64,000 bases of DNA from Ostrea edulis (GCF_947568905.1 NC_079166.1:53940001-54004000); one strand, 5' to 3'. Shown: positions 29,173 to 57,194, counted from the first letter of the stretch. Program-made: numbers and translations. Notes: generated by a model not told the origin, from the sequence alone.

Positions 29173-32034
29173 CTACTCAGTTTCCTGTAGAAGTTTGAGT
29201 ACGTACTTAATGAAATATTGTATTTTGACACCGTTTTCCTCCAAAATACTTGAACCTAAAACATTATGGCGGGGGTTAAAAAAGGACGGGACGAATCGAT
29301 TAGAGAGCCACTCGTCGCATTTGTTAAAAACACTTTTTACCACATCAGTATCACAGCCTTTGCATTTATTTGCGATATGTTTGGACACAGCGTCTGTTTT
29401 GCATTTATCTGCGATATGTTTAGACGGAGCCTTGAGTACAAGATGCTCTAGTGGATCTCTCATGTATAAAATTTTCTCCAGAACAGTTTGGGTACTTTCT
29501 CGGACTACCCTTTCTTCAATGGTATGAAGGAAAGCCATTTTAAGAATATATGATGGAAACATGTTTCCCACTTCTTCGTACATCTCGAACTCCTCTTCAG
29601 AAGACATACTATCACATCGGCTTCGATAATAATTCTTCTCTTCTTCGTAATTACCGAAGCTAACAAGGGGACAAACAGGCAAACTGATCAACGATTTGGC
29701 AGCGATGTAACTGTTTCGGATATGTGGAAGGCATCTTTTCATTATTGTTGTTTCCACGAGTGACAAGGAGCATCGCCAAAGGTTTTCGTCTCCATGACTC
29801 GTCATTTTGGGAACAGCGAGACATGGCAGACGCAGTTGATCTGGATCAAGAAGTTTAGAACTGATTCGTGATTTGTTTGGCCAAGACGGTAGGCGCACCG
29901 CTGGAACGAAATCGACGTTGATTTCTAAACTTTTATATTTGGAACCTCTCCAAATCAAAATTACTTTTGGATCGTTGCTAATGTCCTTAATCAATAACCG
30001 GTCGTCTTTGGGGAAATTTTCACTGAAAACGATATTGGACACACGCTGCGTAAATGTTTGAAACATCATATAGTTTGGAATCATCTTCGATTCCAGCTCT
30101 GTAAGTTCCGAGTACGGGTAGCTCGTCTGCTTCTTCAGAAAAATTAGAGTGTAGTCTGATACAGAAGACTGGGTTTCTTCAAAATCAACACCTTCCTCCA
30201 GGACTTCATGCTTTTCAGTTTCTTTATCAGGAATAAGATGAAAACTTTCTATTACATCACCCATCTCATGTTGTGGATAGATATTCTCACTGAGTTCATC
30301 GAAACAAACAACGTAATCAAATTCGTCCGGATATAGAGTTTTAGTCCCTTCAGAAGAGCTTCCAGCATAGTATACTGTACATCGCAGTTTTGGATCACTT
30401 TCAGATAGGTATCTCGCAGCATTTATTGCAAATTCATCAATGACACTACGGATTTCGTTGGCCTCGGATTCGTCGTACAAAATTCCTGTTGGTGATTCCG
30501 ATATTAAAGAGCTAAGATACTCATCCAATTCTCCGGGTTCCCTCAAATTCTCATTTGAATCTAATATATCTTGTAATGCTTTCAGCTGTAATAACCTATT
30601 AGAGTACTTTGAGTATGTCTTCATTTTCATATTTTGATGAGATTCTCTGCCATGGTCTTGAAAAACTTCCAGAACGTCAAAGCTTGATCGATATTCCGCG
30701 ACATCGTATGCAGTTTTCCCACAGGAATCTTGACACTCCATGTTGCATCCTTCTTTGAACAGGATATATGCAACAGACGATTTGTTATTCCATGCAGCAA
30801 AATGGAGTGGAGTAGATTGGTATATATCTTCTGCATTAATATCTGCTCCTTTCTGTATAAGTAATTCCAAGACACAATCCCAGCCGTTTTCCGCAGCGAT
30901 ATGTATTGGTTGTTTTTTAACCGAATCCTTCATGTTTACATCAGCCCCTAGATCAACTACCGCTTCTACTAGTTTCTTGTTGTTTTTCATAACAGCAAGA
31001 TGAAGGACTGTTTGTCCCCAAAGATCTTGTTCATTCACGTTAATTCCCATGTTTATCAGGTATTTTAGCACATCTGCAGCATCTTCTCTGTCTACGATGT
31101 AATGTAGAAGACCCTGTTTTCTGCTATCCTTAACGCTGAGCATACATCCTTTCTTCACGAGGCACACTAGAATCTGAATAGGTATATCACGAATGGCAAG
31201 GTGCAAGATGGTCTGACCAATTGCAGTTCTTAAATTTGCTGCCTGTTCGTTAACAATAAGACAATCAATAAATTTCCGGGACACCTCTTCGGCATCATCG
31301 GAACATCCTCTAGATTTTTCCACGAAGTGGTGTACTGGGGTTAGACCTTGTAAGTCTAAATCAGACAACGAAGCTCCACTTTTGATTAATACATTGATAG
31401 TTTCATATTTCTCAAGGAAATAATTCGTGGTAGCTAAATGCAACGGAGATCTATCTTGCGAATCTTTGCAATTTACACTTGCACCCCTTCCAACAAGTGT
31501 TCGAATCAAATTTGAACCGTGTGGTTCTTTCATGAAAGATGAGCAGAGAGTATGTAGGGCTGTCTGGCCTTTAGCATTTGTGTGATGTATATCGACGTCA
31601 GCAGACAAATAAAATTCCACCAAAGTTTCATTTCCTAACATGATCGCTCTCTGCAATGGAGTGTCTCCGAATTCATCGTTAGCATGCAGATCACCGTTGG
31701 ACTGAACCAGCAGCCGAGCCGAGACTAGATCTCTAACTACTAGTAATGGGTTGTATTTTGTATTGACAAGTGCTCCATTTTGCAGTAAGGTTTTGACTAC
31801 TTTTGTGTACCCTTTCTTAGTTGCAATATAAAGAGCTGTCAAGCCGTCGCCATCTTCAGCGTTGACATCACATCCGCCTGATATAAGAATTTTTAGTTGA
31901 GCCTCGTTTCCATCTCTAGCTACTCGATGAAGGTTGGGAGAGTCTAATGTCTCATCATCTTCAAGCACTTGTTTCATAAACTGGCCCAACTTGGCAAACG
32001 GCTTATAGGTCTCATTTGTCCTGTTGTTCTCCAT
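29173..32034 (-). CDS. Ankyrin-repeat cGAS-like receptor (about 13 ANK repeats + Mab-21/cGLR nucleotidyltransferase), 953 aa, single coding exon
   Basis: ANK consensus repeats over the N-terminal half; then YAGSSSEGTKTLYPDEFDYV, INVDFVPAV, LAVPK, WRCSLSLVE, PSYILKMAFL, PSFFNPRHNVL. ATG at 32034 directly follows a tttctctctgcag acceptor. Confidence 0.9.
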   Translation of the reverse strand: MENNRTNETYKPFAKLGQFMKQVLEDDETLDSPNLHRVARDGNEAQLKILISGGCDVNAEDGDGLTALYIATKKGYTKVVKTLLQNGALVNTKYNPLLVVRDLVSARLLVQSNGDLHANDEFGDTPLQRAIMLGNETLVEFYLSADVDIHHTNAKGQTALHTLCSSFMKEPHGSNLIRTLVGRGASVNCKDSQDRSPLHLATTNYFLEKYETINVLIKSGASLSDLDLQGLTPVHHFVEKSRGCSDDAEEVSRKFIDCLIVNEQAANLRTAIGQTILHLAIRDIPIQILVCLVKKGCMLSVKDSRKQGLLHYIVDREDAADVLKYLINMGINVNEQDLWGQTVLHLAVMKNNKKLVEAVVDLGADVNMKDSVKKQPIHIAAENGWDCVLELLIQKGADINAEDIYQSTPLHFAAWNNKSSVAYILFKEGCNMECQDSCGKTAYDVAEYRSSFDVLEVFQDHGRESHQNMKMKTYSKYSNRLLQLKALQDILDSNENLREPGELDEYLSSLISESPTGILYDESEANEIRSVIDEFAINAARYLSESDPKLRCTVYYAGSSSEGTKTLYPDEFDYVVCFDELSENIYPQHEMGDVIESFHLIPDKETEKHEVLEEGVDFEETQSSVSDYTLIFLKKQTSYPYSELTELESKMIPNYMMFQTFTQRVSNIVFSENFPKDDRLLIKDISNDPKVILIWRGSKYKSLEINVDFVPAVRLPSWPNKSRISSKLLDPDQLRLPCLAVPKMTSHGDENLWRCSLSLVETTIMKRCLPHIRNSYIAAKSLISLPVCPLVSFGNYEEEKNYYRSRCDSMSSEEEFEMYEEVGNMFPSYILKMAFLHTIEERVVRESTQTVLEKILYMRDPLEHLVLKAPSKHIADKCKTDAVSKHIANKCKGCDTDVVKSVFNKCDEWLSNRFVPSFFNPRHNVLGSSILEENGVKIQYFIKYVLKLLQETE

Positions 32035-32999
32035 CTGCAGAGAGAAATCGAACAATTGACTATTCGTTCAACTGACGTTTTGTGTGGAATCAATTCATTA
32101 TCAAGACTGAAACAGGTGCTATGTGTTAGTGCTCTGTAAGACGTCACATAATATACCATTTCATTGAACAATCTACTTGCTTACACGTTCTAGCTTGTAC
32201 TATCTTTTGAATTGAGTAATACATGCATGTAGATGTGATCACATAACTCCTACACTTCGACATCACCATACCATCCAGACGTCGTGTCATTTATCCGACC
32301 GATTTACACTAGAACCGAACAGGCCTTGACTGTGCTGTCATGAACGGCATTTGAGATTCTCATTTGGTCGGAAAATGCGTCATATCATACACAGACTAAG
32401 GGCTAGCGAAGAAAGTGTATTAATAGTTCCTGTCTTGAACAGCAGGGATAGTTTGTGAAAATCACTCTAAAATAATTTTAGATGTGCCAAAGAAAACTTA
32501 ATATTCTTCGCTTCAAAACGTTTCTACCTATAAATTACAAATGTGCCAATTCGGATGGAATGAAAACCGATTTCCTTACACACTTTCTAAAATACGCTAA
32601 ACATGAGATGCATTCCACGTAGTCAATTTGAAAGACCTGAAGATGATATCCGGAATAATCGACTTTGGTCTGTTCTAGCGGTATCAAATTAAAACATTTA
32701 GTACTTCATTTGGAATACCCCTGTGTTTCTATTTTGATTCATAAAGACCTCGATAGTCAAGTAGAAATGGAAAGTGTATGAATCATCATGTAAAGTATAA
32801 GAACGTACTATGACGAAGAGGGCGGGGGTGGACAATGCAATGCTCTTTTGAGTTTCACGAAGTCTTGTTATCTTTAATATAGAAAGGTTAGGTAATTGTT
32901 TCCTGTATATAGAATTTATGATTAAAGTCCAAATGTATAAAGCAATATAAAGCTTAGGCTGGTTCATTACCTATCACAAACTGGACACCCTTTGCATTT

Positions 33000-33310
33000 A
33001 TTGTGTGCATGGTTAATCATTTGTCACGTGATGCGGTGATAGAGTATGGCTCGGTATCCGATTCATTGTGTGTGGTTAATCATTTGTCACGTGATGCGGT
33101 GATAGAGTATGACCCGATATCCGATTCATTGTGTGTGGTTAATCATTTGTCACGTGATGCGGTGATAGAGTATGACCCGATATCCGATTTATTGTGTGTG
33201 GTTAATCATTTATCACGTGATGCGGTGATAGAGTATGACCCGAGACCCGATTTATTGTGTGTGGTTAATCATTTGTCACGTGATGCAGTGGTAGAGTATA
33301 CCCGATTTCT
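33000..33310. repeat. 63-bp tandem repeat x5, each unit with CACGTG
   Basis: ggttaatc at 33011, 33074, 33137, 33200, 33263. Confidence 0.95.
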
Positions 33311-33320
33311 ACACACTGGT

Positions 33321-33484
33321 TAACCTGTATCAATCCGCCGATATATCAGAATACCTCTTATAATCTGTATCAATCCGCCGATATATCAAAATACCTCTTA
33401 TAATCTGTATCAATCCGCCGATACATCAGTATACTGCTTATAACCTGTATCAATCCGCCGATATATCAGTATACCGCTTATAAC
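33321..33484. repeat. 40-bp tandem repeat x4
   Basis: taa(c/t)ctgtatcaatccgccgatatatcag at 33321, 33361, 33401, 33441. Confidence 0.95.
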
Positions 33485-33890
33485 ATGACGCGAAGCACCG
33501 TTATGATAAACTATTTATTTTATGCCATTAGTCATTTACTTTCTAAATTATTTTGGAAGTTACACCTATAAATTGTTACATTGAAAACGTTTATTCAAGG
33601 AATGGAAGTTGGAAATTCTAGGTATGTCAAAATTATGTTCTTATCAAGAATTGTTCTAAATGGAGATTTGAGTTACCAAGTTTCATAAATAATGAAACAA
33701 ATGAGGCTGGATTATTACCCAGACTTATTCAATAATGGAAATCAAACTTTATTTGTCTTCGTGATCGGTCTGTCTTTTCGGAAAGCATGTTATTGGAATA
33801 ATACCAATAGATATGGATATATACATATGTATACCATAAAACAAATACTTTTAACTAATCAAATTACAAAATGATTATGGCTTTGATAGA

Positions 33891-34098
33891 AGTGGCGGAT
33901 CCAGCGACTCCCTGACAAATATGATTCGCTTTTTATAGAGGTATGTCCAAAAACACAAAAAAATATACGCCTTATTTTGTCAGAACTCACTGTAGTTTCA
34001 TGGGGCTTCACTCTGGATCTACGGGAGGACTTAAGATTGTCCCTAGACACTCAGCCGTTCACTGTGCTCCCCGTCCAGAAATGCCTGGATCCGCCACT
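33891..34098. mobile_element. Short MITE
   Basis: Perfect 14-bp TIR agtggcggatccag / ctggatccgccact; no TSD found. Confidence 0.6.
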
Positions 34099-34317
34099 GG
34101 ATATAATATTATATTACTCTGCTGGGATTTAAATCTGTATTCAAAGTTTTAAAATCTGAGATTTTGTCTCTGCACTGTGAAGTTTGGTGACAACCTAACG
34201 AGAAAATGAAAGCTGAATTCATGACTCAAAACGGTTCAGTTATACTGCATTTACTTCCTTATTTACAAAAGAGTAGGCCTACATACATACTGGATGACAG
34301 ATTAAGGTCTCTACTAC

Positions 34318-34327
34318 GGAATTTCCC
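34318..34327 (-). promoter_or_regulatory. Candidate NF-kB site GGGAAATTCC
   Basis: Exact kB consensus match in the divergent intergenic region; motif evidence only. Confidence 0.3.
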
Positions 34328-35168
34328 ACGGTACATGTAGTAATTTATTAAACGGCAATATTATTTTGAGATTCCAGTGTTGGGTTTCTCGGTTAATTCC
34401 ATGTTATCATAATACTAGTACTTTGAGTGTTCAGTTCCTACAAGTGAAGGCCGGTAACTCTCAGAAGTACTGTAAACTTAATATCAATCATGATAAATTA
34501 TTCAAATGGCGGCGTTCTATACTAATACGATAATATCCCTACCTGGCACATGTATATCAACCGAGTTATAGCTAAGTCTTGAAATCTCCCAGCGTTTAAA
34601 TAGCAGATGAAATTTTAGTTCTATAGTCTTTACGCTGTTTGATTTTGACAAGCCGATTTCGACCAGCTTTAAACAATTTCGATCGACCGTTTGTATTGTT
34701 CTGGGATGAATCGACCGTGTGTATTGCTCTGGGATGAATGGGGAATTTCGAAATGTAGTTCAGTTTGTGTTCTCGACATTTGATGAGAATGAACATTCGC
34801 TACACTTAGGTAAGTTTTAATTATGTATTCCTCTTCATCACCATTTTTACCAAACCGTTTATTTTCATTTCGTATTTGACAAATTATTGTAAGATCCTTT
34901 GAACTGAATACACTCGATATACCAATGTATATCGTATTCACTGCATGTCTGAAGATTATAACCACTTACAGTATCATAGGCACAGTGGGAACATATGTCT
35001 TTACAAATTCAGGCACCTATCAATATACCATTTGTACAAAAAAATAGAAATTCATTTCATAGGTATATACTTTTTTTAAGTCAATCTATTTATCAGCTAC
35101 GAGGTTACTTCATAAAGACATGCAGTTTATTTCATGCAAATAGTTCATGTTAATAGATTTTACATATA

Positions 35169-36660
35169 CTAGTGGAAAAAAGAAACTGTGCATTATCTAA
35201 TATATGAAAAAATAATTTTAAAAATAACAATGAACAAATTTTATTTTTTGTAATTCTGTTAACAAATGTATTCCTTACAACATTTCATAATCCACTAATG
35301 TTAACGTCGAATAACGTCAATTTTAGCACACTCGAAAGACACTGGTATTCGAACTTAAATTAACAAAGTTAATAACGCGTGTGACCACCAATTGCATTTA
35401 CGCATGCTTGACAACGGCGCCTCATTGATGCCACTTAAGTGTTCAGAAATGCTTGAGGGATGTTGTTCCATATGTTGGTTAAAGCCTGGCCTAAATCAGC
35501 CAATGTCACCGGCTGATTTGGTAAACGGCGTAGAAGTCGTTCCATTTCATCCCAGACGTGCTCGATCGGCGATAAATCGGGGAAAACAGCTGGCCAAGGC
35601 AAGACATCAACATTCTGTTGAACAAAAAAGTCCCTGACTACACGTACAACATGTGGCCTTGCGTTGTCTTGCTGCAGAGTGATGTGATTTTGCTGTCTCT
35701 GTATGAAGGGTATCACATGGCGCTGAATAATTTCGTCTCGATAGCGTACGCTGGTGAGATTTCCATTGACAATTTGTAGAGGGGTCCTTCCACGTGCTGT
35801 TATCCCATCCCACACCATAACGCTACCTCCACCGAATTGTCGACGTTGCACAAGCGTCCTGGTACCGCTCCCCAACGCGACGATACACTCTACAACGGCC
35901 GCCACTGCTATCCAAATGAAATCTGGATTCATCAGTGAACAGAATATTGGCCCAGTCCTGTATTTTGAATCGAAGATGTCGTCTGCACCACGCTAGTCTA
36001 GCGATACGATGACGTTGAAGCAGTATTGGGTGCACCGATGGACGTTTTGGTCTGATGTTGTGCTCGCGCAGACGATCACGTACAGTTCTTGGACTGATTG
36101 GTCGAAGTCCAGGAATGCTACGAGCAGTCAGATTTGCTGTCTGGAAACGATTTCTCAGGTGCACAAGTCTAATGTGGTTGTCTTGTTGACGCGGCGTTAT
36201 ACGTGGACGCCCAGAATGTGATCGATCCCGAGTGTTACCCGATTATTGGAAACGTCTTCATAATGACTGGATGGTCTTCCGATGAACTCCAAAGTGTCTT
36301 GCTACGATATTTTGTGCCATTCCAGCTTGAAACATCCCAACATCACGATTACGTTGGTTTTCGCTGAGTAGTGGCATGACAGAAGGGTAAATTGTGTCAA
36401 AACTAAAGTGCTTTCCTTAACTAATAGTGTCTAAACAAACCTTTTACACTTCTTACTCCAAATAGTATTGGCCAGTATAACTCGTGCGTATGAACACTTC
36501 AATAAACAACATGAATAAGCCCGTGCATCTGAGTCGGGTAGTACCTGATATTGTTAAAAAAAAACATCACCTTTATCGATTGTTTAGATTTTATAAACAT
36601 GAACAATAAATATAGAAAAATTATACTAAATTTTATGATGCTGTATCTTTTTTCCTCTAG
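35169..36660 (-). mobile_element. Tc1-family (DD34E) transposon with a decayed transposase (ATG 36377 to TAA 35369)
   Basis: FTDESRF, QQDNARPH, PDLSPIE with 34-residue D-E spacing; SGRPR linker; internal stops and frameshifts; imperfect TIRs ctagtggaaaaaagaaac / gtatctttttcctctag, both flanked by TA. Confidence 0.92.
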
Positions 36661-37105
36661 TATATATACCTGTAGCTAGGAAACCACATGATTTCCCGCT
36701 ATTTTACTGAGGTAGCGTAAAGTAGTTTGAAACCGTTTGATCCAACTTTTCCTTTATAAATTTCTCCGAGAAGCATAAGCGTTGAATCCAGTTAATTTCT
36801 ATAAACTGGTATTTGGATATTGAGCAATGAATATGCAAAACTGTGGCTTACCAATGAAGAAAACTAATTGTGTACGACGATGTAGTCAGAATTATAAGAT
36901 GGTGTCATGTAGTCATCAGCGAGTGATATTCTAATAGGAGTAGGGACAAAAATCTTTGCTCACTGTAAATTTATTCATTTTGCAGTAAACGTGTTCGCCG
37001 TCCTTCATTAATTTTGAACCACAATATATCTTTATTTTCAGAGTGGTTTGTCTTTTCCATGCGTAACATTTTGGACGAGTGGACAATATAAAAACAGTAT
37101 ACATT

Positions 37106-40100
37106 ATGGAGGACTCTGATAGTGACAATGATTGGAATTGGATGGAATCACTGGATCCTATACAACAACATTGGGCCGAAGAGAACAAAACATTTGTTCC
37201 TACAAAAGCATCGGCATTTATTTCTGAAAAACTGCTAACACATGACAGAATTATTATAACAGGGTCAGCGGGATCAGGCAAATCTGCCATAGCGCAACAC
37301 ATCGCTCTCAAATATGCCATGGAGAATAAACGGATTTCCTACATCAATGCCTTGGACGAGATTGAAGAAAGAATTCCGAATATGGCAGGAACCGATATAG
37401 ACATATTTGTTATTGATGACCCCATAGGGAAATATCGTTTCGATCCATTGGCCTTTAGATGGTGGCGACGTCAGCGGAAACAGCTGAAATACTTCTTAAG
37501 ACGTGGACGAAAAAGAGAGAAGGTTGCTGAAGATATCAGAGTCCTTCTGACTTGCAGATCGGATCTTATAGATGACGATTCGTCATTATTCTTTAAAGAT
37601 TATACAATGATCAATATTGATGAAGATTCATTAGCCCTGACAAATGACGAGAAAGAGAACATTTTGAAGTCTCATATCAGTGTATCAGACTTGGGTGAGA
37701 ACGATATCAAACTTATTTCAGAATCAACTAAAGCATTTCCAACAATATGCCAGACTGTTGGATGCAATGAAAATTTTCAGGCTAACATAAACACATTTTT
37801 TCAAAATCCCTCCGAATTGATCAGAAAAGAAGTCCTACATTTGAAAGAAAATGCTAAAGAAAAATATCTGGCGCTGTTTTTGATTGTGATATTCAATAAC
37901 TCGTTTGTGCAAGATGATTTTTTGTTAGATTGCCAAGAGAATGTTGTTAATGATGATGAAAATGATGATGATGACAATGGAAGATTGGCTGACATTAACA
38001 AAGGAATACTTACTGATATGATGACAAAATTTGGGTTTTCGGAGACAACCTCTGCTCGGTCTATTCTAAGTAGTATGGAGACTTTGAACGGACCATTTCT
38101 AAAGAATATAGACGGTACTTTTCAGTTCCAAAATAGTTTGTTGTTTCAAACATGTGTTCACCTATTCTGTACAGAGGTTTACGATATATTCTTAGAATAT
38201 TGTGACAGTTCATTTTTTCGGAAATATGTCAAGACCGATCTTCAAAACAAAGGAAATTTGTTTGTGGATATATATCTAGAGGACAACTTCATTGGCGGAT
38301 TTGTAAAGAGAATAGCAAGTGACATTTATGATGGAACATTTTTGGATGTATTCTTGTGCCCTTGGACAAATGATGAAAGAGTGATAATGGCAATGGAGAA
38401 AATTTTGATTACCAAAACCACAAAGGATATTATGGAGTTGACTGTGAATCAAGCACTGTCAAAAGAGGATTCAGGACTGAAACCTTATAGCAAAAAGGAA
38501 CGAATTGTGCTGAGGGGATTTTCAAAACTTGATTTCATAATATATGGAGACAAAATATCGCCGATAGTTCTGTCATTGATTTTCAATCATAACAGAATAT
38601 TTTCTGCTATGTTTGATAAACTGAAACTCGATCAAATCTCTAGTAGCTGTCTAAAAAAGGAACCACTTTTAAGTGCTGCTTGTGCTAATGGTAACAAACA
38701 TTTAGTGGGGAAAATATTGGAATTTTATGGAAAAGCCTTGCCAAATGTTATGTGGAATGACAACGAAAAGATTCACGCCTTTCATATAGCTGCTAATTTC
38801 CACCACGTTGATGTTATGGAAATGTTTCTAGCCAAGAAGCAAGACGTAAATATCACAACAACTCTGAACGAATCTCCATTGTTTCTAGCCCTCTCTGTTG
38901 AAATGTGGTATGTAAAAACCTCGAAGCAAACCGACGAGGAAAGAAAGCAGGACGGGTTGTTGGAAACTCTCAGTCTTCTTATTAAGAATGGGGCAAATGT
39001 TAACACTCACTCAGAAAACAGAGAACATCCTTTGACTTTGGCTTGTAGCAAAGTGAATATCAAAGCCACGCAATTGTTACTTGAACATGGAGCAGACGTT
39101 AACAAAGTAGGTATCTCTAAAATTGGCGGATTACACTTTGCTGCGATGCATGGACATGCTGACCTCGTTAATTTATTGTTAGAAAAAGGAGCAGATATCA
39201 ACTTACGTACGTCAAAAAACCAAACTGCCTTATATTTCGCAGCAAGGAAAGGTCATCCTGCTATTGTCGAGATTCTTCTTTCCAGAGGAGCAGATAAAGA
39301 ACTGAAAACTCATACATGGAATTCACCATTCTTTGTGGCTTGTAGATATGGTCACGAAAAAGTAGTAAACCTTCTTTTGAAATTTTTCTCAGAAGACGTA
39401 AAGAAATCAGATAGAGATGAATGTCCTCCTTTACACGCAGCGATTGAATCTGGTAAGGTTGAAATCGTAAATTTGCTTCTCGAAAATGGCGCTAAGGCAA
39501 ACGCCAGAGAGGAAAGGTCTATGAAAAGTCCGCTCTATTTGGCAGCTGGTTTAGGAAAATTGAGCATTGTCAAATTGTTGTTACAGAAAGGAGTGTCTAT
39601 AGACATTCAAACAAAGGATGGGTGTACACCACTTATCAAGACATGTAAAAATGGATTTTGTTTAGTTGCACAATGTTTGCTTGCAAACGGAGCAAACGTG
39701 GATATTTGTGATAAACGCAAATGGACTCCACTGTTGTATGCTTCAAAATATGGTCATTTGGACATTGTTAAACTCTTGCTAGAAAGTAAAGCAGATATGA
39801 GTTTGAGTACCGGAAATGGAGAAGATCCGTTGTACATCGCGTCTTCTTGGGGGCATGAAGAAATAGTGAAAGAACTTCTAAAGCGGAAAGCAAATGGCAA
39901 TACCTTGAGCACGGGTCTAAGAACACCACTCTCTGTGGCTGTGAAGAAAGGTCATAAAAAGGTGTTGGAAGTCCTTCTTCTCAATGGTGCTAACGTGAAT
40001 CAACGAGTAGACCACAATGATACTTCCCTTATCATTGCAGCAAGAGAAAACTTGCTTGACATTGTAAACATACTGCTGAAAAACGGTGCTGATATTACAT

Positions 40101-41251
40101 TGAGTGATTGTGAAATGGAAAATGCATTGCACAATGCATGCCAAACAGCCAGCAACGATGTTATTGAGACACTGTTAGATGCTGGACTCGATATAAACGG
40201 CCCTCAATGTGAGGGATATTCTGCTTTACATTTGGCATTGATGAACCACAACAGACAAGCGGCTTTGTGTCTATTAGAGCATAATTCAGATGTTAATATG
40301 ATATCTAATGGGAAAACCCCAATTTCCCTTGCTTGTGAAACTGGATATTATGATGTAGTAGAAGCACTTTTGAATAAAAATGTTGAAGTTAATCCAGAAA
40401 ATGATAGTAGACCGTTGACACCCGATCCCCTGAGCATAGCAGCTGGGAATGGCTCTCTACAAATAGCACAAACTTTAATTCGATCCAAAGCCATTGTCAA
40501 CTCTCGAAATTCTGAAGGCGAAACTCCGTTATTTCAAGCCACTAAACAAGGACATTGCAGGTTGATGAAATTGCTCATTGATAACGAAGCTCGTGTTAAT
40601 ATCCAAGATAAATATGGAAAAACATGCCTACATCTGAGTGTGTGCAAACATAAAAGTGATGATATGGTATTGCTCTTATTGAAGAACAACGCAGCTGTGA
40701 ATGTGTGCACCAAAGACGGAATCACCGCTCTGATGATGGCTATCGCGGGAAAACAAGGAGTGTCCGAGAAACGGATCCGTTCTATCATTGAACACGGCGC
40801 AAATGTTAATGCACAGGATACATTTGGAAAAACTGCACTTCACCGAGCAGCAGAGTTGGGTTTGGGATCTGTCATAGAAACACTGTTAAATAATGACGCC
40901 AATGTTAATACATGTAATCAAGATGGCGAAAGTGCTCTATTCATTGCGACTAAGAGCGGACATGCAAATGTTGTTCAGTTACTTCTACAGAACAATGCAG
41001 AAGTCAAAGTACTTTCAAATTCCGGTGAAAGTCCATTCGATATCGCCAATCGAATGGAATTTCACAACATTTCCAAACTTCTACAGGAATCTGCAGCTAT
41101 CAAAGCAGATAGAGGTGATTCCCCAAAGTTAGATTCGAAAGAAGATTCTATAACTTCTAAGGAGCGGAAACTGGTATTGGTCAAATGTAACCCTTTGGGA
41201 CCTGCTCTGCCAAGAAAACGAAGTCCCTATAAGATACCAGTTCGACGATAA
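37106..41251 (+). CDS. nSTAND3-type STAND NTPase + more than 20 ankyrin repeats, 1381 aa, no N-terminal effector domain, single coding exon
   Basis: W..E.K.FVPT, Walker A GSAGSGKS, Walker B IFVIDD, sensor-1 LLTCR, helical region, long ANK array. First ATG is 37106; in-frame TAA at 37064; candidate acceptor ttttcag at 37041. Confidence 0.88.
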   Translation: MEDSDSDNDWNWMESLDPIQQHWAEENKTFVPTKASAFISEKLLTHDRIIITGSAGSGKSAIAQHIALKYAMENKRISYINALDEIEERIPNMAGTDIDIFVIDDPIGKYRFDPLAFRWWRRQRKQLKYFLRRGRKREKVAEDIRVLLTCRSDLIDDDSSLFFKDYTMINIDEDSLALTNDEKENILKSHISVSDLGENDIKLISESTKAFPTICQTVGCNENFQANINTFFQNPSELIRKEVLHLKENAKEKYLALFLIVIFNNSFVQDDFLLDCQENVVNDDENDDDDNGRLADINKGILTDMMTKFGFSETTSARSILSSMETLNGPFLKNIDGTFQFQNSLLFQTCVHLFCTEVYDIFLEYCDSSFFRKYVKTDLQNKGNLFVDIYLEDNFIGGFVKRIASDIYDGTFLDVFLCPWTNDERVIMAMEKILITKTTKDIMELTVNQALSKEDSGLKPYSKKERIVLRGFSKLDFIIYGDKISPIVLSLIFNHNRIFSAMFDKLKLDQISSSCLKKEPLLSAACANGNKHLVGKILEFYGKALPNVMWNDNEKIHAFHIAANFHHVDVMEMFLAKKQDVNITTTLNESPLFLALSVEMWYVKTSKQTDEERKQDGLLETLSLLIKNGANVNTHSENREHPLTLACSKVNIKATQLLLEHGADVNKVGISKIGGLHFAAMHGHADLVNLLLEKGADINLRTSKNQTALYFAARKGHPAIVEILLSRGADKELKTHTWNSPFFVACRYGHEKVVNLLLKFFSEDVKKSDRDECPPLHAAIESGKVEIVNLLLENGAKANAREERSMKSPLYLAAGLGKLSIVKLLLQKGVSIDIQTKDGCTPLIKTCKNGFCLVAQCLLANGANVDICDKRKWTPLLYASKYGHLDIVKLLLESKADMSLSTGNGEDPLYIASSWGHEEIVKELLKRKANGNTLSTGLRTPLSVAVKKGHKKVLEVLLLNGANVNQRVDHNDTSLIIAARENLLDIVNILLKNGADITLSDCEMENALHNACQTASNDVIETLLDAGLDINGPQCEGYSALHLALMNHNRQAALCLLEHNSDVNMISNGKTPISLACETGYYDVVEALLNKNVEVNPENDSRPLTPDPLSIAAGNGSLQIAQTLIRSKAIVNSRNSEGETPLFQATKQGHCRLMKLLIDNEARVNIQDKYGKTCLHLSVCKHKSDDMVLLLLKNNAAVNVCTKDGITALMMAIAGKQGVSEKRIRSIIEHGANVNAQDTFGKTALHRAAELGLGSVIETLLNNDANVNTCNQDGESALFIATKSGHANVVQLLLQNNAEVKVLSNSGESPFDIANRMEFHNISKLLQESAAIKADRGDSPKLDSKEDSITSKERKLVLVKCNPLGPALPRKRSPYKIPVRR

Positions 41252-42015: not shown

Positions 42016-42143
42016 NNNNNNNNNNNNNNNNNNNNNNNNNNNNNNNNNNNNNNNNNNNNNNNNNNNNNNNNNNNNNNNNNNNNNNNNNNNNNNNNNNNNN
42101 NNNNNNNNNNNNNNNNNNNNNNNNNNNNNNNNNNNNNNNNNNN
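42016..42143. other. Assembly gap (~128 N)
   Basis: Run of N. Confidence 1.
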
Positions 42144-44866: not shown

Positions 44867-47800
44867 ATTAAAGAATCCGCCTGATAGATAAAACCAAAAA
44901 ACTGGCTGTAATAACAGTCCATGACTCATTGCAGTGAATAACAGACACAAGCAACGTTTACCAATTTATTCATATAACAGCAATGACACATTCGGGATAT
45001 ACTGAAATGGACAATATCGGCCGCATGTGAAAATTTTGTGGGGTAACTGGGGAGTCGCCCAGTGAGCCAGTTTAACTTAACTTGTAAGGGGTACACTGGG
45101 TGGCCCGAGTAAAACATTCAGTGCCCAGACCTGAACGGACGCCAGCGTTCTAAGGAGGTAAGCGAGACCCGCCCTTCTCACCCTGTCTCCTGCAGTGCTA
45201 CCTGTTATGTACATTATCATGTTGGACATAAGCCCCAAACATGCATCAGACTGTAGCATCCCCTCACTGAAGTGAGGTGGATGTGGGCCCAACCGTCCCC
45301 GGTGGTGGCCCCACTATTAGTTTACTTGTTCTAACTTGTACGACTTTTAGTACTGTAAATTGCAATCTGATTAAAACCAGATCCTGAGATCCGCTCACTT
45401 AGATCGCTACACTAGGATCTGACGTAACCCCATATAGGGTCACGTCCGCATGACCTTTCGTTAAACCAATGAAATTCACCCTGTCGATTTATACCAACGA
45501 TAATTTTTCTCCCATGAACCTTTGCGTCATTTACGTTAGAGATGCAAAAAAAAAAAAATGACAGACGACTGCACACCTGTCAAAACATGCGATTTAAACA
45601 ACGTCTGTATTCTCTGCGGGTTTTCTTTCATTCAAACGCTAAAAAATCCCAATGGAGTTCACAATTCAAGGAAAATGGCTTCGATTGTTTGGTTTGAAAG
45701 AAAACATATCACAGCTAGATGCGACGTCACAATGCACCGTTTACGTCGACTGGCGTTATATTCCTCGCGTTATTTAAGTAGACCATCTTGAAAACTATTC
45801 AATTCGTACCCGTCCCTATTCATACATAAATCTGAATTCACAATTAATTTAATTTGGGTATATTTCATATCGTACGTTTTGTTGTTTGAATGAACGGAAT
45901 AGATTAGGCATTATTGCGAAAGTTTAAAATTCGTTATGCGAGAATATACAACTTTACAGTGTGGAATAAACTTCGTGGGAGACAGATTGCAGCAATTTGT
46001 TTACGAATTGCCAGGAACCGCCTAAATAGCCATCATTGTCTGTATGGCGCAATCTGACTGGCTGATAGTTCTCATGAATATTCCAAGCGAAAGGTCATGC
46101 GGACATGACCCCCTATGGGGTTACGTCAGATCCTAGTGTAGCGATCTAAGTGAGCGGATCTCAGGATCTGGTTTTAATCAGATTGTGTAAATTGCCCCCT
46201 GCTTTAGAAGCAGGTGGGGGAAACAACCAGGTTTTGGAGCATAAACAGTCATCACATACCATTACCGACTCCCCAGTTCGGCCACAGACATTGGAACAAT
46301 GTCCCCCACAAAAACTTGTAGGATTAAAAGCTGAGTGAAACTCAAAATACAATAAAGAATTACATGGATAAGAATAAGTCATTTGATCAAACCACAGTAC
46401 TTGAAACTGGAGTTGCACAAAAATTACAGTAAACGCACAATCGGCAAACAGCAACAAGCACGAAATGATAAATTACTTGTGCGGCGGGTAAGAAAAACCT
46501 TGACATTTGAAGAAAAAGAAAAAAGAAATTCCAAGGCCGCTTGATATTGTTGAGAAATAATTGATTTCCCAAGACCGACATACAGACGAGTGCCATCTGT
46601 TCGGAACAACTCAATCTCAGTAGCCTTGATGACATGGTTGTGTCCAATGTACAAACCTCTAACCTGGTTAGCCATGAATTTTTATCATGCAGCTATGGGC
46701 AACATGCCAATATCTTCTAGGTACTGAAAACGTGTCGTGGGAGTGCCATCCGCATGAAAAGAGCAATATATAAGTAATGGGAGGGGGGCTATAAATATGC
46801 CTTAATTAGTAGTGTTGGGCAGATAATTTGACAACCTAGGGGTTTGCCGGTTTGGATGGTCTTGGACCTATGTGAAAATACCAACGCTTGACCTCGCTGG
46901 TTTTGAGAATCTTGTGGATTCGACGATGACAAAACTCACTGACTGCGCAAACCGTAAAAATGCCAATGAAAAGGCTGCTGAAAAAATAAGACATGATTAA
47001 AAAAAAAAAGGCGAGCGACATACTGATGTTAAAACACGAAAGATTTTAACAAATAATTGGTAAGATATAGGAAGTCTTGATATATTGAGACACCTATAAC
47101 CCGCTTGACACCTTCTAGGGATGAGAGAAATTTGATTGGTTGTTTATGTACATCAACCAGAATTCGCTGTGAATTTTGCCCCAAGACATAGCAGGATTGG
47201 AGGCCTTACGGAGTCGGAATTGGTCGTCATACTTTTGCCAATTTTGTGAACGATTAGCTGCAAGCCTTATATCTCGCATGTACTTAAGCATTTCTTGGGC
47301 CGTTTGACTATGTTGAAGTACAATGCTCATGTAAATCATGAAGGTTGATGTCCACTTTTCTATGTTCAAAAAGGAGTTAAGTTGGCGCTTGACTACGTAT
47401 AGCTTGCCATTGACAAGTTGTAAATCCCCGTGGGACTCAAATTGCTCCAATTCCGTAGCAGATTTGAGTAGGACAGACAGATCAATAAATCCCCCCTCCC
47501 ATATTTTTTGCTTGAGTTTAAGCGGGACATGACTGCCGATATCATCGTATGTAGATGTAAATTGACAAGGTAAAGCCAAGGGTAAATATGACGCTTGGTT
47601 CAACAAAAAATTGCAAGACTCACCCGGGTTATCCGGTGTATTATCGATTGGGAATCGAGGGACCTCCTCAGGGGGTTGTGCCTGCCCTTCTGCAGGGGCT
47701 AGTCGATCCGTCCAAGGTGTGGTCGTGTGATTTGGACTTCGTTCCCGGAGTTGAGCTGTTGTCCGACGATTACGTTTCATCCCGACCCCCCTGGCCGGGG

Positions 47801-48120: not shown

Positions 48121-49118
48121 ATTATAAGCCCACAGATACCCACCAATACCTGTATTTCGGATCGTGCCATCCCCACCATACTAAAACAGCTTAACCATAT
48201 AATCTCGCAAGAAGGATTTGTACCATTGTCAGCAATATCGATACGAGGGATATCCGCTTGGAGGAATTAAAATTGTATTTATTAAGCCAAAAATACCCAG
48301 AACAACTTGTAGACGATGGAATAATGAAGGCTAAGGAGTGCGATAGGATACAGCTACTTTCAAACACACGATGTGCTAATGACGGAGAAATAATACCATT
48401 TGTACACACTTATAATCCGAGAAATCAAAACATCAATTCAATTGTTTATGAATTAAACAAGCTACTTGGGGAAGATGAACAAACAAAAGGCATATACAAG
48501 AACTGTCGTTTTATTAGCAGTAAACGCCAGCCCAAAAGTCTTAAGAGAATACTTTGTTCCTCCCAATTAGATGACCGTACTTATACAATGTCAAAGAGTA
48601 CTCACCCTCGATGCGGTACATGTGACTACATTACAAAAGGGACCAGTTATAATTTTAACGGACGAGAATTTAAAGTTAATGCTAACATGTCATGCGATAC
48701 AAAGGATGTCATATACGCCATCACATGTCCTGGATGCAAGGAATATTACATTGGTGAAACTGGCAACACTCTCCGTGCCCGTGTACGTGTACATAAGCAG
48801 CACATCAGTACACCTGAATACAGACAAATCCAGTTAAGTGCACACCTGGAAACGTGTGGTAAAAAACGATTTAACATTTTCCCATTTTATAAACTCAGAT
48901 GTGCCAGTGCTATTCAGAGATGGGAAAAAGAATAACATTTCATTGGTATTCTAAAGCCAAAACTTTTAATAGTCTTTTATAATTGCCTATGATTTTCCCG
49001 TACTTTTTCCAGATCATTGTTTTACATTATCCATGACGTCACAATATAGACATTTAACGTTCCGCTTACTTTGACGTCATAATCACTGTTACTATGATAC
49101 TGCTATGTATACATTTTT

Positions 49119-49159: not shown

Positions 49160-49194
49160 GGAGGATTTCTGTATTTTCTTTTCATATTTTTTAA

Positions 49195-49225
<31 letters not shown>

Positions 49226-51300: not shown

Positions 51301-51420
51301 AACCCTATAACATCAACTTATTTATCAGTAGCCTGTCTCGTACCCTGTAACATCAACTTATTTATCAGTAGCCTGTCTCGTACCCTATAACATCAACTTA
51401 TTTATCAGTAGCCTGTCTCG
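51301..51420. repeat. 40-bp tandem repeat x3
   Basis: accctataacatcaacttatttatcagtagcctgtctcg x3. Confidence 0.95.
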
Positions 51421-52660
51421 TTTTACAAATTCATCAAACATAAAGCATGTTCTCACGTATTGAATCAATTGAAAAAATAAACTTCATATGATGGAAATGG
51501 TGAAATTTACAGTAGCTGTATGAAGCTGACTTGTTAGTTTGTATTGTGTAAAACATTTATGAAACAGATGGGGAAAATTCTGTCGTGTTTTATTCCGAGT
51601 TCACTGGGGCATACTAACATCGATTCGACATATGAATAAATGTACATCACTCTCATCCATTGATGATACATGCATTAGTATATGAATACTTTTCGTAAAA
51701 TGAGTAGCAAGTCATAATACATTCAAGGAAGATTTTTTTCTTTCCTTTTTGAAATAACTTGTTTGTGTCTGTGAATAGAATTGGTTATGCTAGTGTATGA
51801 ATATTACAGGATCTCGGTGACTTCAATCATACAAACCAGCTGGTGGATCAAATATACATTGTAGTTTCCTTACTTCCCTCAGTCCATGTTTCAGTTTGTT
51901 TGTCAAATTACAACTGATTGTGAAATAATGAGAGTAATACATCTAGATTATTGAAAATCGTGCAAAGGTGTATGTTTCTTTATATGTTGAAAATCGTTAA
52001 TCATTATCGCTCTGATTCGCGTTTTAATTTCCTTATCACAAATTTGTAAACAGAATGTATTACAATATTAGTCATGAACAAATGCACTTAATGCCTCAAC
52101 TCTGTAATTGTTTTCAATTATAAACCTTCAAGAAATACCTAAAAATTAATTTTCTAGTACAAGGTGAAAGGTGTATCTATGAATTACACAGCACAGCAAT
52201 ACACGTCCAGTATCATCAACGTATATAGACCAAAATACTCTTAGCATTAAGCGAAATAATTTGGATCGTATTTAAATCAAATTGAAAAGAAACACTAGAA
52301 TAAGTGTGTGTTTCTTAACAAAACTTAGATATACTATATACATATAGCTATTCATGTACTGGTACAATACGCATGACATAGTTGTAGAAGGATATTCATT
52401 AGAGAAAAACATAATTGAGAATGCTTTAGATTGTAATGCTATTCTATTCATCTACTCGAATTGTAGACAAGTAATAGCACATCTCGTCACCGCTTTACAA
52501 TGATCACCTCAGATAACATACTTTGTTAAAATCTTATATAAATACAAACACATCATACATGTAAGACTTTATCATATAAGTGTCACATGCACATCCCTGA
52601 TGTCCCTTCTATTTCCGAACAAAAAACTTTAGCGGAATAGTTTAGACATCGGACTTCAAA

Positions 52661-55600
52661 ATGTGTGTAAAAATGCCCAGGTGTGGATGTGGACATCGCT
52701 TACCTTCCGCAGACTCGGGGGCAGAGGATGAGAACAGTGACGACGAAAATATGCCATCTTGGATAAAATTTTGGGAACAAGAAGATAGAAAATTCGTTTC
52801 AACGAGGGCCTCCAAACTTGTAGAGGATAAATTACGAAATTGTAACAGGGTTATCATACTGGGAGAGACTGGATGTGGTAAATCTGCCATTGCTCTAAAC
52901 ATAGCATTAAAGTATAGGTCTCGGAAGTGGAAAGTTGTGATGGTGAAGAATATCAGAGACTGCTCCTGTGAAAGAAAACTCTGTTTTTTTTCATTATCAA
53001 CGATCCGATAGGAAAAACTGTATTGGACGAAAAATCTTGTAGACAGTGGTACTTGCAGAAGAATTTGCTGAACCGTTATTTTTCGACAAAAAGGCAGAAT
53101 GAAAAAAAGGTCAAAACTCCAAAAGTTATTGTGACTTGTAGGTCGAGTCTTGCTGATGAAGACGTCAGTTACTATTTCAAGCAATTTTCTCTGATCAATA
53201 TGGATGAAAGGGGCTTTGAATTGGCTAAAGAGGAAAAAGAAAAGATATTAAAGAAGCATACAGATTGTTCACAATGTACCGATGCCGATGTCGATGAACT
53301 ACTGAAAACTGAGAAATCATTTCCTTTAATATCTGAACTGCTTTCTGCCAGTAAAACATTTGAAGGAAATATACTTGCGTTTTACAGAGAACCTTTTGTA
53401 GAAATCAAAAAAGAAATTCTATCTTTAAAAGACATTTCTAAAGAACAGTGTATGTGTTTGTTTATACTAAACGTGTGCGGAAATCGATTAACAAAGGAAA
53501 ACTTTGAAGAGAAAGAAGATGACTACAAGCATATTGAGAGTATTCACGATGACAGAGAGAATGGGGTAGTCAATAATGACCGAAAAAGTGAAAAGGGAAA
53601 CAATGAGAAAGACATTGAGAAGTCCAACGACTGCAACGGGGAAAGAATAGACAATTATAAAAATGACAACAAAAATGATAACGAGGATGGCAAGAACAAT
53701 AATGATAACTATGAACTCGATAAACAGATGATAAATGACTTATTGAAAGCTTTCAAGCTTCCTGAAAGCACATCCAAAAGAACTCTCTTCGAAAGTTTAA
53801 ATCAGTTTAGAGGTCATTACTTCGTGAAACGAATTAAAGATATTTTTCAAATCACAAATGGTTCTTTTCTGCGAGCATTGACTCATATATTTTGTACAAG
53901 CTTTCCAGCGCAATTCTTAAAATACTGCCCAAGTAATTTTTTTCGTACTTTGACAACATCAACTGCACAGTCGGATATCATTCCAAAAGTCCAATTACAA
54001 GATAATTATATCAATTTATTTGTGGATATAATTCAGGAAGATATAAAGACTGGCACATTTTTGGATGTTTTTCTGAGTCCTTGGATCCGGGATAAAAGCG
54101 TCTTGACCAATCTGCTTTTGCGATTCGAATCAATGCCATATGAAAAGATGATTGAGTTGACTCTCAACTCCAAATTAAATGCTCATCTGAAGATTGCAAA
54201 GCCCAAGGTACGAAAACAAATGACTGGCTTTTCTCGACTGGATTTGATTGGACTAAGTAAGGAAGTATCTCCAATAATTCTGTCACTTGTATTAAACCTG
54301 GATGACCTTTATCACGCCATGTTCACTTTGATAAGAAATAATGCAAATGGATCTAAATACTTGAATAATGCCCCTCTAATGAGTGCATGTTGTGTCAACG
54401 GACGAGAAGATCTTGCTAGGCTAGTTTTAGATATTGCAAATGACAGAAAAAGATGCTGGAGTAAACGAGAAAATATCTACCCCATGCACATTGCTGCCAA
54501 CTTCCTCAACACTGACATTTTAGACCTTGCTTTAGTTGGAGAGCATGATGTGAACATGACTACACGAACCATGGAATCACCTTTTTTCTTGGCAGCAGCA
54601 GCCGGAAAATACGCCCTCCAAAATATCCCCTGGACTCTCAAGCAAGAATTGAGCAACTCCTCTAAAACTTACGATGAATTGGTCGAGGAGAACCGTTTAA
54701 AGATCCTTACTCTTCTTTGGCAGAGAGGTGCAGATGTAAATATTCATCCAGATAAATCATCGTCTGCCCTTGCATATGCCTGTCAAAAAGGAGATATAGA
54801 TACAATCCAGTTTATGATTAAGAGTGGTGCGAGTGTGAAAGAAACTAATGATGAAAACTTTGGCGCACTACATTTTGCTTCAGAAGTAGGAAATATTGAA
54901 ATTGTTCAGCTGTTGTTGTGCAGTGGTGCAGATATCAATATCTGTACCTCAAAGGGTTTGACGCCGTTATATCTAGCATCATTCAATGGACATGCTGATG
55001 TAGTGGATATGTTTCTTTCTAAAGGAACCACCCAAGTATTGAAGGATAAATCAGAATGTAATCCATTCTTCGTAGCCTGCAAGCATGGTCATGAAAGGAT
55101 TGTCGAAATGTTTTTAGAATATGATCCGTTCGTGCATTGCAAATTGCCTGATAACACTTCAGCTTTATTGGCGGCTGTTGATAATGGACACAAGGAAATT
55201 GTTGAATTGCTTCTAAAAAAAATGGCGCTGATGCAAATATTGTTCAAAACAATAGTAAAATAAGCCCTTTATATTCTGCTTCCGGTTCTGGATATGATGG
55301 TATTTTGGAATTATTACTAAAACCCAGTGAGAGTGTCGACATGGAAACGATGAATGCGAATATTCCATTGGATATTGCATCACAAAATGGTCACCATTCT
55401 ATCGTTCAGACATTACTTGAAAATGGAGCAAATGTCAATCACTACACTTTAGAAAGGAAATCTCCATTGTTCCATGCAACTGAGAATGGTCATTATGATA
55501 TAGTGATGTTTCTATTGCAAAAGAAAGCAGAACTGAATTCCTGCACAAACAAAGGAAGAAATCCATTGATGCAAGCTTCATCTTGTGGATATGAAAATAT

Positions 55601-57194
55601 AGTTCGCGAACTTCTGAGTCATGGAGCTAATGTAAATGAAGCTGATGTCGAGGGAAGTACAGCACTTTATTTGGCCTCCGAAAATGGCCACATTGATATT
55701 GCAAAAGTGTTGTTGGCAAACAAAGCAGATGCTAGTCTGTGCAATGACGTTGGACTTACCCCACTGTATATTGCATCTCGATTTGGACATCATATAATTG
55801 TTCAAGAACTTTTGCAAAAGGATACCAAAATTTGTGGTACGTCCTCGAAAAACCCCCTACTAGCAGCGTCGTATTTTGGACATTACAAAACTGTTGACAT
55901 TCTTTTGCAAAACAGGGCAAATGTTAACGTACAAAATGACGACGGAGATACTCCTTTGATAACCGCGTCCAGAAAGGGATGGTGTGAAATCGTGAAAATT
56001 CTTCTGAAGTTTGAAGCTGATGTCAATCTTTATAATGAAGATGATGAAAATGCTTTACACTGCGCTTGTTTTATGGGTCATACAGACATTGTTAAGATAT
56101 TACTCGATCATGGTATGGATATCGATGGTCATGACGAATACACACCATTGCAGCAAGCTTTATTTGGGGAGCGTATGACTACTGCTTTGTTTCTGTTAGA
56201 TCATGTCGCAAATGCGAACATTGTCACCTATGGTACAAGTGCTCTTTATTTGGCATGTGATGCCGGATTCAAGGAACTGATGAATATTCTTTTGGAACTA
56301 AATGCAGACGTCAATCCAAAGAACCCTGATAATTCCCCTGCAGATTCTCCTCTTTTGGCTGCCATCAGAAATGGATCTTTTTACATTACAAAAGAACTTT
56401 TACGTCATGGGGCCAATATCATAAAAACGAACAGACATGGCGGCCAAAGTTTGTTAGCGATGGCTGTTGAGAACCAAAATCTTGGGATAGTGAAGTTACT
56501 CATTGAATATGGCGCTAATGTCAACGAACAAGATGAATATGGAACCACAGCTCTGCATGCAAGCGTTTATTATACAGACACTCTAGATTTCATGACAATA
56601 TTATTGAACAACAATGCCAATACGAATGTCAGGAACTATATTGGAACAACTCCATTAATGATGGCACTGCACAAAAATCCTGAGACGAAGGAACGAGTGC
56701 AGGCTCTCCTTACTCACGGAGCTGACATTAATGCCCGTGATAACTTTGGGTGTTTACCACTACACTCTGCTTGTAAATGGCCCGATGAACATGATGTTAT
56801 TCCATATCTACTAAATAATGGCGCTGACATAAATGCTCAGGATGAAAATGGAGAAACTGCACTTTATGTGACATCCTTTTATGGCTTTCTTGAGAATGTG
56901 AAAACACTTGTTCGATACGGAGCAGACATTAACCTTCACACGAGCGTTGGTCTCAGTCCACTTGATATTTCCATGCAAAACGGATATACAGATATCGAAA
57001 AATTTCTCAAACAAAATATGAACGAAGAGAAGAATAAAAGGGAAAAGAAAATATCTTCCAAATTGGAAAACAACAGTGTTTCTGTTTCACAAAGAGAGGT
57101 TGTTTTGGTTAGACAGAATGCTTTAGCGCCAGTTCTTGGAAGGAGAAACAACTCTATGAAACTTCAGAAGACATGGCAGCAAAGAAATTTTTAG
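52661..57194 (+). CDS. Second nSTAND3-type NTPase + more than 20 ankyrin repeats (~1511 aa if repaired); two frameshifts at homopolymers (assembly error or young pseudogene)
   Basis: ORFs 52661-53011, 53023-55263 and 55305-57194 join into one protein paralogous to 37106-41251 (GETGCGKS, FIINDPIGK, IVTCR, FLDVFLSPW); shifts at T8 52984-52991 and A8 55215-55222. Confidence 0.85.

Follow-up and report, generated by a model that had tools for sequence, protein, structure and literature searches.

A stretch of 64,000 nucleotides from Ostrea edulis (NC_079166.1:53940001-54004000), which we refer to in its entirety as the window, contains within positions 29173-57194 a gene for an ankyrin-repeat-fused cGAS-like receptor (ankyrin-cGLR), a head-to-head gene for an nSTAND3-ankyrin protein (STAND1) and a further nSTAND3-ankyrin locus (paralog 2). 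The reading that we favor, and hold to be reasonably probable, is that this is an oyster-family-specific innate-immune gene neighborhood inherited by descent, with the cGLR and STAND1 being independent neighbors in it; the immune function of both genes is predicted from their sequences. An earlier note on this DNA had described three single-coding-exon genes. This description is accurate for the cGLR and STAND1, each of which is a single open reading frame (ORF), and fails for paralog 2, which is split over three frames. The same note had an ankyrin-nucleotidyltransferase gene on the minus strand and a STAND-ankyrin gene on the plus strand diverging from a spacer of ~5 kb, and the distance between the two start codons is indeed 5.0 kb. 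ORF calling in conjunction with Pfam places the three large loci, one on the minus strand and two on the plus strand, as follows, with the parts of the first two given beneath them:

29173-32034, minus strand: ankyrin-cGLR coding sequence, a single exon specifying 953 aa from the ATG at 32034
30616-31938, minus strand: ankyrin-repeat arm of the cGLR, ORF residues ~40-480 (Pfam Ank_2, E 3e-66, 8 stretches)
29176-30420, minus strand: Mab21/cGAS-like nucleotidyltransferase domain of the cGLR, with the GS...DEFD...VDFVPA signature and an isoelectric point (pI) of 5.3
32035-37105, no strand: divergent spacer between the start codons, with tandem repeats and a transposase remnant
37106-41251, plus strand: STAND1, an nSTAND3-ankyrin protein of 1381 aa encoded by one exon, with no effector domain
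37193-38785, plus strand: nucleoside triphosphatase (NTPase), helical and winged-helix modules of STAND1 (Pfam nSTAND3, AlphaFold2, Foldseek)
38786-41095, plus strand: ankyrin-repeat arm of STAND1, residues 561-1330 (Pfam Ank_2, E 1e-124, 11 stretches)
41159-41248, plus strand: C-terminal tail of STAND1, …VLVK.NPLGPALPRKRSPYKIPVRR (alignment of six oyster orthologs)
52661-57194, plus strand: paralog 2, a pseudogene of nSTAND3-ankyrin type split over three frames, with the Walker A motif GETGCGKS starting at 52862

Conservation and phyletic spread of the gene pair

The corresponding locus of Saccostrea echinata (JAVQLB010000003.1, ~11.93-11.98 Mb) presents, in order, a STAND2-type gene (1460 aa), the STAND1 ortholog (1337 aa) and, head-to-head with the latter, the cGLR ortholog (950 aa); past the cGLR come a Mab21 fragment, then another cGLR paralog (930 aa) and finally CDC5L. 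The extra pieces occupy positions 1310-2360 (the Mab21 fragment) and 10001-12793 (the second ankyrin-cGLR paralog) of the S. echinata sequence L009, on which a Myb_Cef gene adjoins the cGLR paralog. The window codes for one cGLR only, against two in S. echinata, and a search of the window for a remnant of a second paralog like that of Saccostrea found none. The locus of Magallana gigas (OY970753.1) likewise has its cGLR (945 aa) head-to-head with STAND1 (1393 aa), at a distance of 1.36 kb; their RefSeq proteins are consecutive (XP_011436317/XP_011436318), and on the STAND side a dystrophin-like gene comes next. A Magallana-like contig from Logan (L008) also carries the pair head-to-head. The divergent orientation of the cGLR and STAND1 is conserved in these three genera, and in oysters only. 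Outside them, annotation and tblastn detect no STAND NTPase within 10 kb of the single-exon ankyrin-cGLR ortholog in Mercenaria, Mizuhopecten, Pinctada, Antedon or an ENA assembly. The earlier note had named an adjacency not conserved in relatives as something that would refute its proposal; the adjacency is kept in S. echinata and M. gigas, and the refuting condition applies beyond the oysters, where the cGLR occurs without the STAND gene. The two partners do not co-occur wherever either is found, and the five cGLR loci lacking a STAND neighbor imply that a coupling between them is neither obligate nor ancestral.

The conservation extends beyond the pair, into the 3' flank of the cGLR gene:

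15956-25590, minus strand: CDC5L exons (collinear tblastx exon matches, 93-100% identity, to Saccostrea echinata)

The order and orientation of CDC5L in the window match those in S. echinata. Since this flank is collinear as well, the adjacency of the cGLR and STAND genes amounts to ordinary inherited synteny; the block shared among oysters is longer than the pair, so the conservation of the pair does not specifically argue for coupling. An exhaustive HMMER scan of a library of 1.84 billion proteins recovers only four representatives of the STAND1/2 clade, after which the identity falls to ~30%, and the clade looks oyster-restricted. The phyletic patterns of the two families indicate that the pairing arose in the oyster lineage beside an older cGLR, and was then inherited within the longer collinear block. 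Both the cGLR and STAND1 behave as 1:1 orthologs, with moderate and even rates.

The ankyrin-cGLR

The open frame of the cGLR (29173-32055, minus strand; 960 aa) has its first ATG at 32034, with in-frame stops upstream of it, and a protein identical to its product (P0001) is specified by a collinear Logan contig. The identification of this gene as an ankyrin-cGLR, already made in the earlier note, is upheld by the combination of ankyrin repeats, a cGAS fold and intact active-site motifs. Pfam Mab-21 (PF03281) matches residues 569-773 with 26.5 bits against a cutoff of 24.1, while Mab-21_C (PF20266), with 18.7 bits, is below its cutoff of 24.1. The signature GS-x10-DEFD … VD[FLIV]VPA shows no variation across 20 orthologs (oysters, pearl oyster, scallop, mussel and clam), in all of which the catalytic residues G565-S566, E578-F-D580 and D715 (ORF numbering) are unchanged. 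We obtained an AlphaFold2 model of residues 480-960 with a predicted local distance difference test score (pLDDT) of 81 and a predicted template-modeling score of 0.83. The best Foldseek matches of this model are human cGAS, mouse cGAS and Cv-cGLR1 (8gjw), with E-values of 1e-13 to 1e-12, and the top 50 matches in the PDB are without exception cGAS or Cv-cGLR1 (E 1e-13 to 1e-11). In a HMMER alignment of the cGLR to 8gjw the catalytic motifs line up.

The catalytic domain is acidic, with a computed pI of 5.3. The cGLRs that sense double-stranded DNA or RNA have a pI above 8.5 (Li et al. 2023, bioRxiv 10.1101/2023.02.22.529553); this basic surface (pI > 8.5), which is a trait of the nucleic-acid-sensing subgroup rather than of the entire family, is absent from the cGLR considered here. 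By that criterion, its ligand is probably something other than nucleic acid. Between oyster genera, the ankyrin arm shows 59-66% identity versus 69-71% for the catalytic domain; judged by these values, the arm is nearly as conserved as the enzyme domain. A derivation of this arm by copying from that of the adjacent STAND gene was considered and rejected, as the two are only 22-31% identical, which is generic ankyrin similarity.

The crinoid Antedon mediterranea (OZ206130.1; L011 10001-13202) codes for an ankyrin-cGLR with 52% identity to its oyster counterpart, situated between a RING gene and a semaphorin gene. It groups with eight ENA/Logan sequences in a clade that is sister to the oyster genes with support of 100/100, to the exclusion of the orthologs from pearl oyster, scallop and mussel, whose identity is only 33-37%. 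This placement could reflect horizontal transfer or mislabelled material.

STAND1 and its C-terminal tail

The open frame of STAND1 spans 37079-41251 on the plus strand, with the ATG at 37106, and its product matches Pfam nSTAND3 (PF20720) with 72.6 bits against a cutoff of 27.2. Both the Walker A motif, GSAGSGKS (residues 53-60), and the Walker B motif, DIFVIDDP, are conserved. An AlphaFold2 model of residues 1-600 (pLDDT 84) retrieves through Foldseek NLRP2, NOD2, Apaf-1, Dark, NLRC4 and SAMD9 together with Avs3/4/5, with E-values of ~1e-5 to 3e-4.

The N-terminal effector or adaptor domain (CARD, PYD, TIR or HEPN) of the tripartite NLR receptors is lacking in STAND1. Only ~30 residues precede the Pfam nSTAND3 match, in agreement with the claim of the earlier note that the STAND proteins have no signaling domain of their own; counted to strand 1, the segment has ~45 residues and is folded onto the NTPase in the model, where residues 11-43 form confident helices packed on that domain and residues 1-8 are disordered. 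Upstream coding exons that would provide STAND1 with a head, named by the earlier note among the findings that would count against its proposal, were looked for and rejected: the Saccostrea and Magallana orthologs share the start methionine, the M. gigas gene is a single exon, in-frame stops occur before the ATG and the Logan contig specifying the protein P0049 is collinear with 36612-41591, thereby spanning 494 nt upstream of the ATG. Among the 150 best STAND relatives found with HMMER, ~50 have at least 120 residues ahead of the NTPase, and the rest, some of which are fragments, are headless; the heads sampled comprise HEPN_DZIP3, CARD, SAM+CARD and transmembrane segments. Head-lessness is, by this survey of relatives, common in the STAND family.

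The extreme N-terminus of STAND1 (37106-37150) is itself conserved, as an acidic run of serine and aspartate followed by an aromatic-x-W-[MV] motif (MEDSDSDNDWNWM), the aromatic part of which starts the first helix in the model.

At the other end, the “effector-less” STAND proteins terminate in an almost invariant tail, …LGPALPRKRSPYKIPVRR. Across six oyster orthologs, 80% of the positions in the last 25 residues of STAND1 are invariant, versus 33% in the whole protein, making the tail the most conserved 25-residue window of STAND1, above the Walker regions. A related tail is present in the STAND2-type proteins and in paralog 2 (57100-57191); the motif is absent from the ~200 other proteins compared and is confined to the STAND clade. 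It contains a P-x-L-P motif, a basic RKRSPYK stretch and an S-P-x-K motif. The passage of PMC4358367 that cites Xu et al. 2012 gives P-x-L-P as the core of a class of peptides bound by the grooves of ankyrin repeats. The STAND1 tail may be a docking or autoinhibitory peptide, and it may alternatively be a nuclear localization signal. We regard this conserved STAND tail as a modest new observation.

The spacer and the mobile elements of the locus

The spacer between the two start codons measures ~5.0 kb in O. edulis, 3.3 kb or, as taken for the sequence comparison, 4.6 kb in S. echinata and 1.36 kb in M. gigas (~1.3 kb on the Magallana-like contig). In O. edulis it is inflated by tandem repeats at 32996-33306 (63 nt, 4.9 copies) and 33321-33484 (40 nt, 4.1 copies) and by a transposase remnant:

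35435-35932, minus strand: DDE_3 (Tc1/mariner-type) transposase remnant (Pfam PF13358, E 3e-9)

No conserved spacer sequence was recovered by sensitive blastn between the window, Saccostrea and the Magallana-like contig. The Logan contigs are unspliced for 494 nt upstream of the STAND1 ATG and for 984 nt upstream of the cGLR ATG; since their ends fall in repeats and the type of library is unrecorded, the contigs carrying the two intact genes are not callable as transcripts. The Logan contig with the cGLR ends inside the first spacer repeat (32996-33306).

To the right of STAND1, the window contains an assembly gap and two probable retroelement remnants:

42016-42143, no strand: intergenic assembly gap of 128 N (window sequence)
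42373-43146, minus strand: GIY-YIG ORF of a probable Penelope-like retroelement (Pfam PF01541), 230 nt right of the gap
48258-48935, plus strand: second GIY-YIG ORF, likewise Penelope-like (Pfam PF01541)

The gap is located in AT-rich non-coding DNA 765 nt past the STAND1 stop and ~10.5 kb before paralog 2. It touches no frame of the three genes, and the head-to-head pair is wholly to its left. Because it falls between STAND1 and paralog 2, the distance separating these two is an estimate and their join is an assumption; the order of STAND1 followed by a STAND2-type gene is also seen on ungapped Saccostrea DNA. Both GIY-YIG ORFs lie between STAND1 and paralog 2. On the opposite side of the locus, a field of tandem repeats (27162-29108) is found just downstream of the cGLR stop, including a 34-nt period with ~21 copies at 28326-29105; its part at 27162-28229 resembles a repeat (L009 13367-13870) that follows the S. 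echinata cGLR paralog at the corresponding place. The ORFs at 43706-44530, 47115-47780, 43053-43469, 52642-53184 and 5996-6556 match no Pfam family.

A young pseudogene in the STAND family

Paralog 2 is 34-38% identical to STAND1. Its pieces are in three different frames, namely the P-loop piece (52661-53011), a middle piece (53023-55263) and the ankyrin piece (55305-57194). The breaks, both of which are bridged in alignments with the intact relatives P0055 and P0064, map to two homopolymer runs:

52984-52991, plus strand: frameshift site 1, a run of eight T (frame comparison and Logan contigs)
55215-55222, plus strand: frameshift site 2, a run of eight A (frame comparison and Logan contigs)

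The evidence from reads consists of Logan contigs on 52300-57300 from the genomic-looking runs X3, X4 and X6 and from the RNA-like run X1. The former three are taken as genomic DNA because they cover coding and non-coding regions evenly, over 67-90% of a 9.9-kb stretch that includes the spacer; X3 and X4 may derive from the individual used for the assembly. X1 has no contig on paralog 2 (52300-57300). At site 2, a run of eight A is seen in X3 (depth 248) and in X4 (depth 63), on a gap-free contig of 1346 nt, while X6, which is from another study, has nine A and is in frame, reading …LLLKKNGADANIV…. At site 1, X4, X6 and about a third of the depth of X3 have seven T, and the eight T of the window also appear in one of these three runs. 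Only six or nine T would join the frames at this site, and with seven T a stop is met ~20 codons on. Hence, no sampled allele is intact at site 1, and site 2 is polymorphic. An assembly error as the source of the frameshifts was rejected, as independent short-read contigs yield the eight A and either seven or eight T, both out of frame. Outside the two breaks, paralog 2 is open over ~1,500 codons; this, along with the invariably broken site 1, marks it as a young, polymorphic pseudogene that is still segregating.

Independent neighbors or a coupled pair?

Under the reading that we favor, the older ankyrin-cGLR would be switched on via its ankyrin arm, probably by a protein or a small ligand and not by nucleic acid, and would presumably synthesize a cyclic nucleotide for STING. 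The oyster-born nSTAND3-ankyrin protein, an NLR-like ATPase, would be transcribed divergently from it, possibly off a shared divergent promoter. Each protein would then signal by its own route, which for STAND1 could comprise oligomerization along with the use of the conserved C-terminal tail as a docking or autoinhibitory peptide. Tandem STAND paralogs would have been added on one side, one of them now being the young, polymorphic pseudogene. Certain observations pull in the opposite direction. The pair is kept in three genera even though the flank on the STAND side has changed, with a dystrophin-like gene next to it in M. gigas. The 1.36-kb spacer of M. gigas would fit a bidirectional promoter, and hence selection for co-regulation or joint function. 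STAND proteins without a known output domain call for a partner, and the invariant tail holds P-x-L-P, which, in the passage cited from PMC4358367, is the core bound by ankyrin grooves.

One alternative is a two-component module, wherein STAND1 would sense a ligand, oligomerize and recruit or gate the ankyrin-cGLR, such that the cyclic nucleotide would be the STAND output. It could account for a head-to-head pair kept in three oyster genera, with a spacer of 1.4 kb in M. gigas; for a STAND1 without an effector domain, whereas its relatives bear HEPN_DZIP3, CARD or SAM-CARD heads; for a tail that is the most conserved part of STAND1 and confined to its clade; for an acidic cGLR (pI 5.3) whose activation by nucleic acid is unlikely if judged as in Li et al. 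2023; and for a cGLR ankyrin arm that is about as conserved as the catalytic domain. However, the cGLR family predates the STAND clade and is more widely distributed, with five other loci having no STAND neighbor, a mismatch which shows that the cGLR does not require this STAND protein. Further, the conservation of the pair sits in a longer syntenic block and, being within one family, is weak evidence where synteny is generally retained, and about two-thirds of the 150 best STAND relatives are also headless (some being fragments). We deem such a module improbable. The particular form in which the STAND tail, exposed on activation or oligomerization, would dock in the ankyrin groove of the acidic cGLR and switch on its cyclic-nucleotide synthesis, with the cGLR as the STAND effector, appears about as improbable, and a physical sensor-cyclase module as an obligate coupling is unlikely.

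If the genes instead shared regulation only, an infection-responsive bidirectional promoter would drive both, with their products acting in separate pathways. The divergent orientation in all three genera and the mere 1.36 kb between the start codons in M. gigas are compatible with this, and the unspliced Logan contigs reaching 494 nt and 984 nt upstream would narrow the untranscribed core, if they are transcripts. Against it, none of the spacer sequence is conserved, its length varies between 1.3 and 5 kb and it has taken up transposon and repeat insertions, and we judge this explanation to be unlikely. A non-immune role is very unlikely: both proteins would be housekeeping ankyrin scaffolds, their Mab21 and STAND modules having developmental or structural functions, as in MAB21L1/2. 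Such a role would agree with single-copy 1:1 orthologs of moderate, even conservation lacking hypervariable repeats, and with the RefSeq names, which are those of ankyrin or PP6-regulatory-like proteins. Yet the catalytic triad is fully retained in 20 orthologs, the closest folds are those of cGAS and an oyster cGLR, STAND relatives bear the kind of CARD and HEPN heads that typify immune and cell-death proteins, and the tandem duplication along with the turnover of pseudogenes is consistent with a family of immune genes.

Bivalve cGLRs number in the hundreds and most are without a known ligand, those fused to ankyrin repeats are uncharacterized, and many invertebrate STAND/NLR-like proteins have no known output. 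The pair kept across oyster genera provides a two-gene system, in a farmed species, for asking whether an NLR-like ATPase can signal via a cyclase, and both the acidic surface of the cGLR and the invariant tail of the STAND protein are accessible to direct experiment. If the two are only neighbors, the locus still documents the birth, duplication and ongoing death of oyster immune receptors, including a segregating pseudogene.

Relationship to known systems

Both kinds of genes are already known, and the conserved pair is a modest new observation. The earlier note knew of no description of such a pairing, and the literature library that we searched likewise yielded no paper that pairs a molluscan cGLR with a STAND or NLR gene; a literature search with the M. 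gigas locus identifiers also found no paper. Fusions of ankyrin repeats to cGLRs have been catalogued as an architectural class (Li et al. 2023, bioRxiv 10.1101/2023.02.22.529553, Fig. 1C, S2A), in a study that characterizes none of them biochemically and reports no pairing with a STAND gene; XP_011436317 is not found in the searched parts of its supplements. Like these fusions, the oyster protein has ankyrin repeats at its N-terminus ahead of a cGAS-like core whose active site is complete, and it belongs to the bivalve cGLR expansion. It resembles Cv-cGLR1 of Crassostrea virginica (8gjw) and vertebrate cGAS in fold (Foldseek E ~1e-12, TM-score 0.63-0.73 depending on the target) and in the alignment of the GS, DEFD and VD.VPA motifs. 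It is distinguished from them by its low identity (13-17%), the acidic instead of basic character of the domain (pI 5.3), an insertion of 32 residues modeled with low confidence and the ankyrin arm of ~480 residues.

The nSTAND clades were introduced by Kaur et al. 2021 (PMC8195603). With the marine-invertebrate nSTAND3 proteins of the HEPN_DZIP3/CARD-STAND-ankyrin type, STAND1 has in common the nucleotide-binding domain, the helical modules, the C-terminal ankyrin arm and a lineage-specific expansion. It differs in having no HEPN, CARD, Death or transmembrane head, and bears instead the invariant tail specific to its clade.

In plants, the NLR sensor/helper pairs RGA4/RGA5 and RRS1/RPS4 are encoded head-to-head, both members are NLRs and their joint function has been established genetically. 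The oyster pair is comparable in its divergent arrangement, its short shared spacer and the presence of one partner without a signaling output of its own; it departs from the plant pairs in that one partner is a cyclase and in that an interaction between the two would be hypothetical. In bacteria, the CD-NTases of CBASS and the Avs STAND sensors are separate systems that are clustered by the dynamics of mobile islands and do not constitute a cyclase-STAND module. As in those defense islands, the oyster locus brings a cGAS-family cyclase together with a STAND ATPase, and the STAND1 model matches Avs folds. Unlike the bacterial versions, however, the oyster genes are chromosomal orthologs residing in a stable syntenic block.

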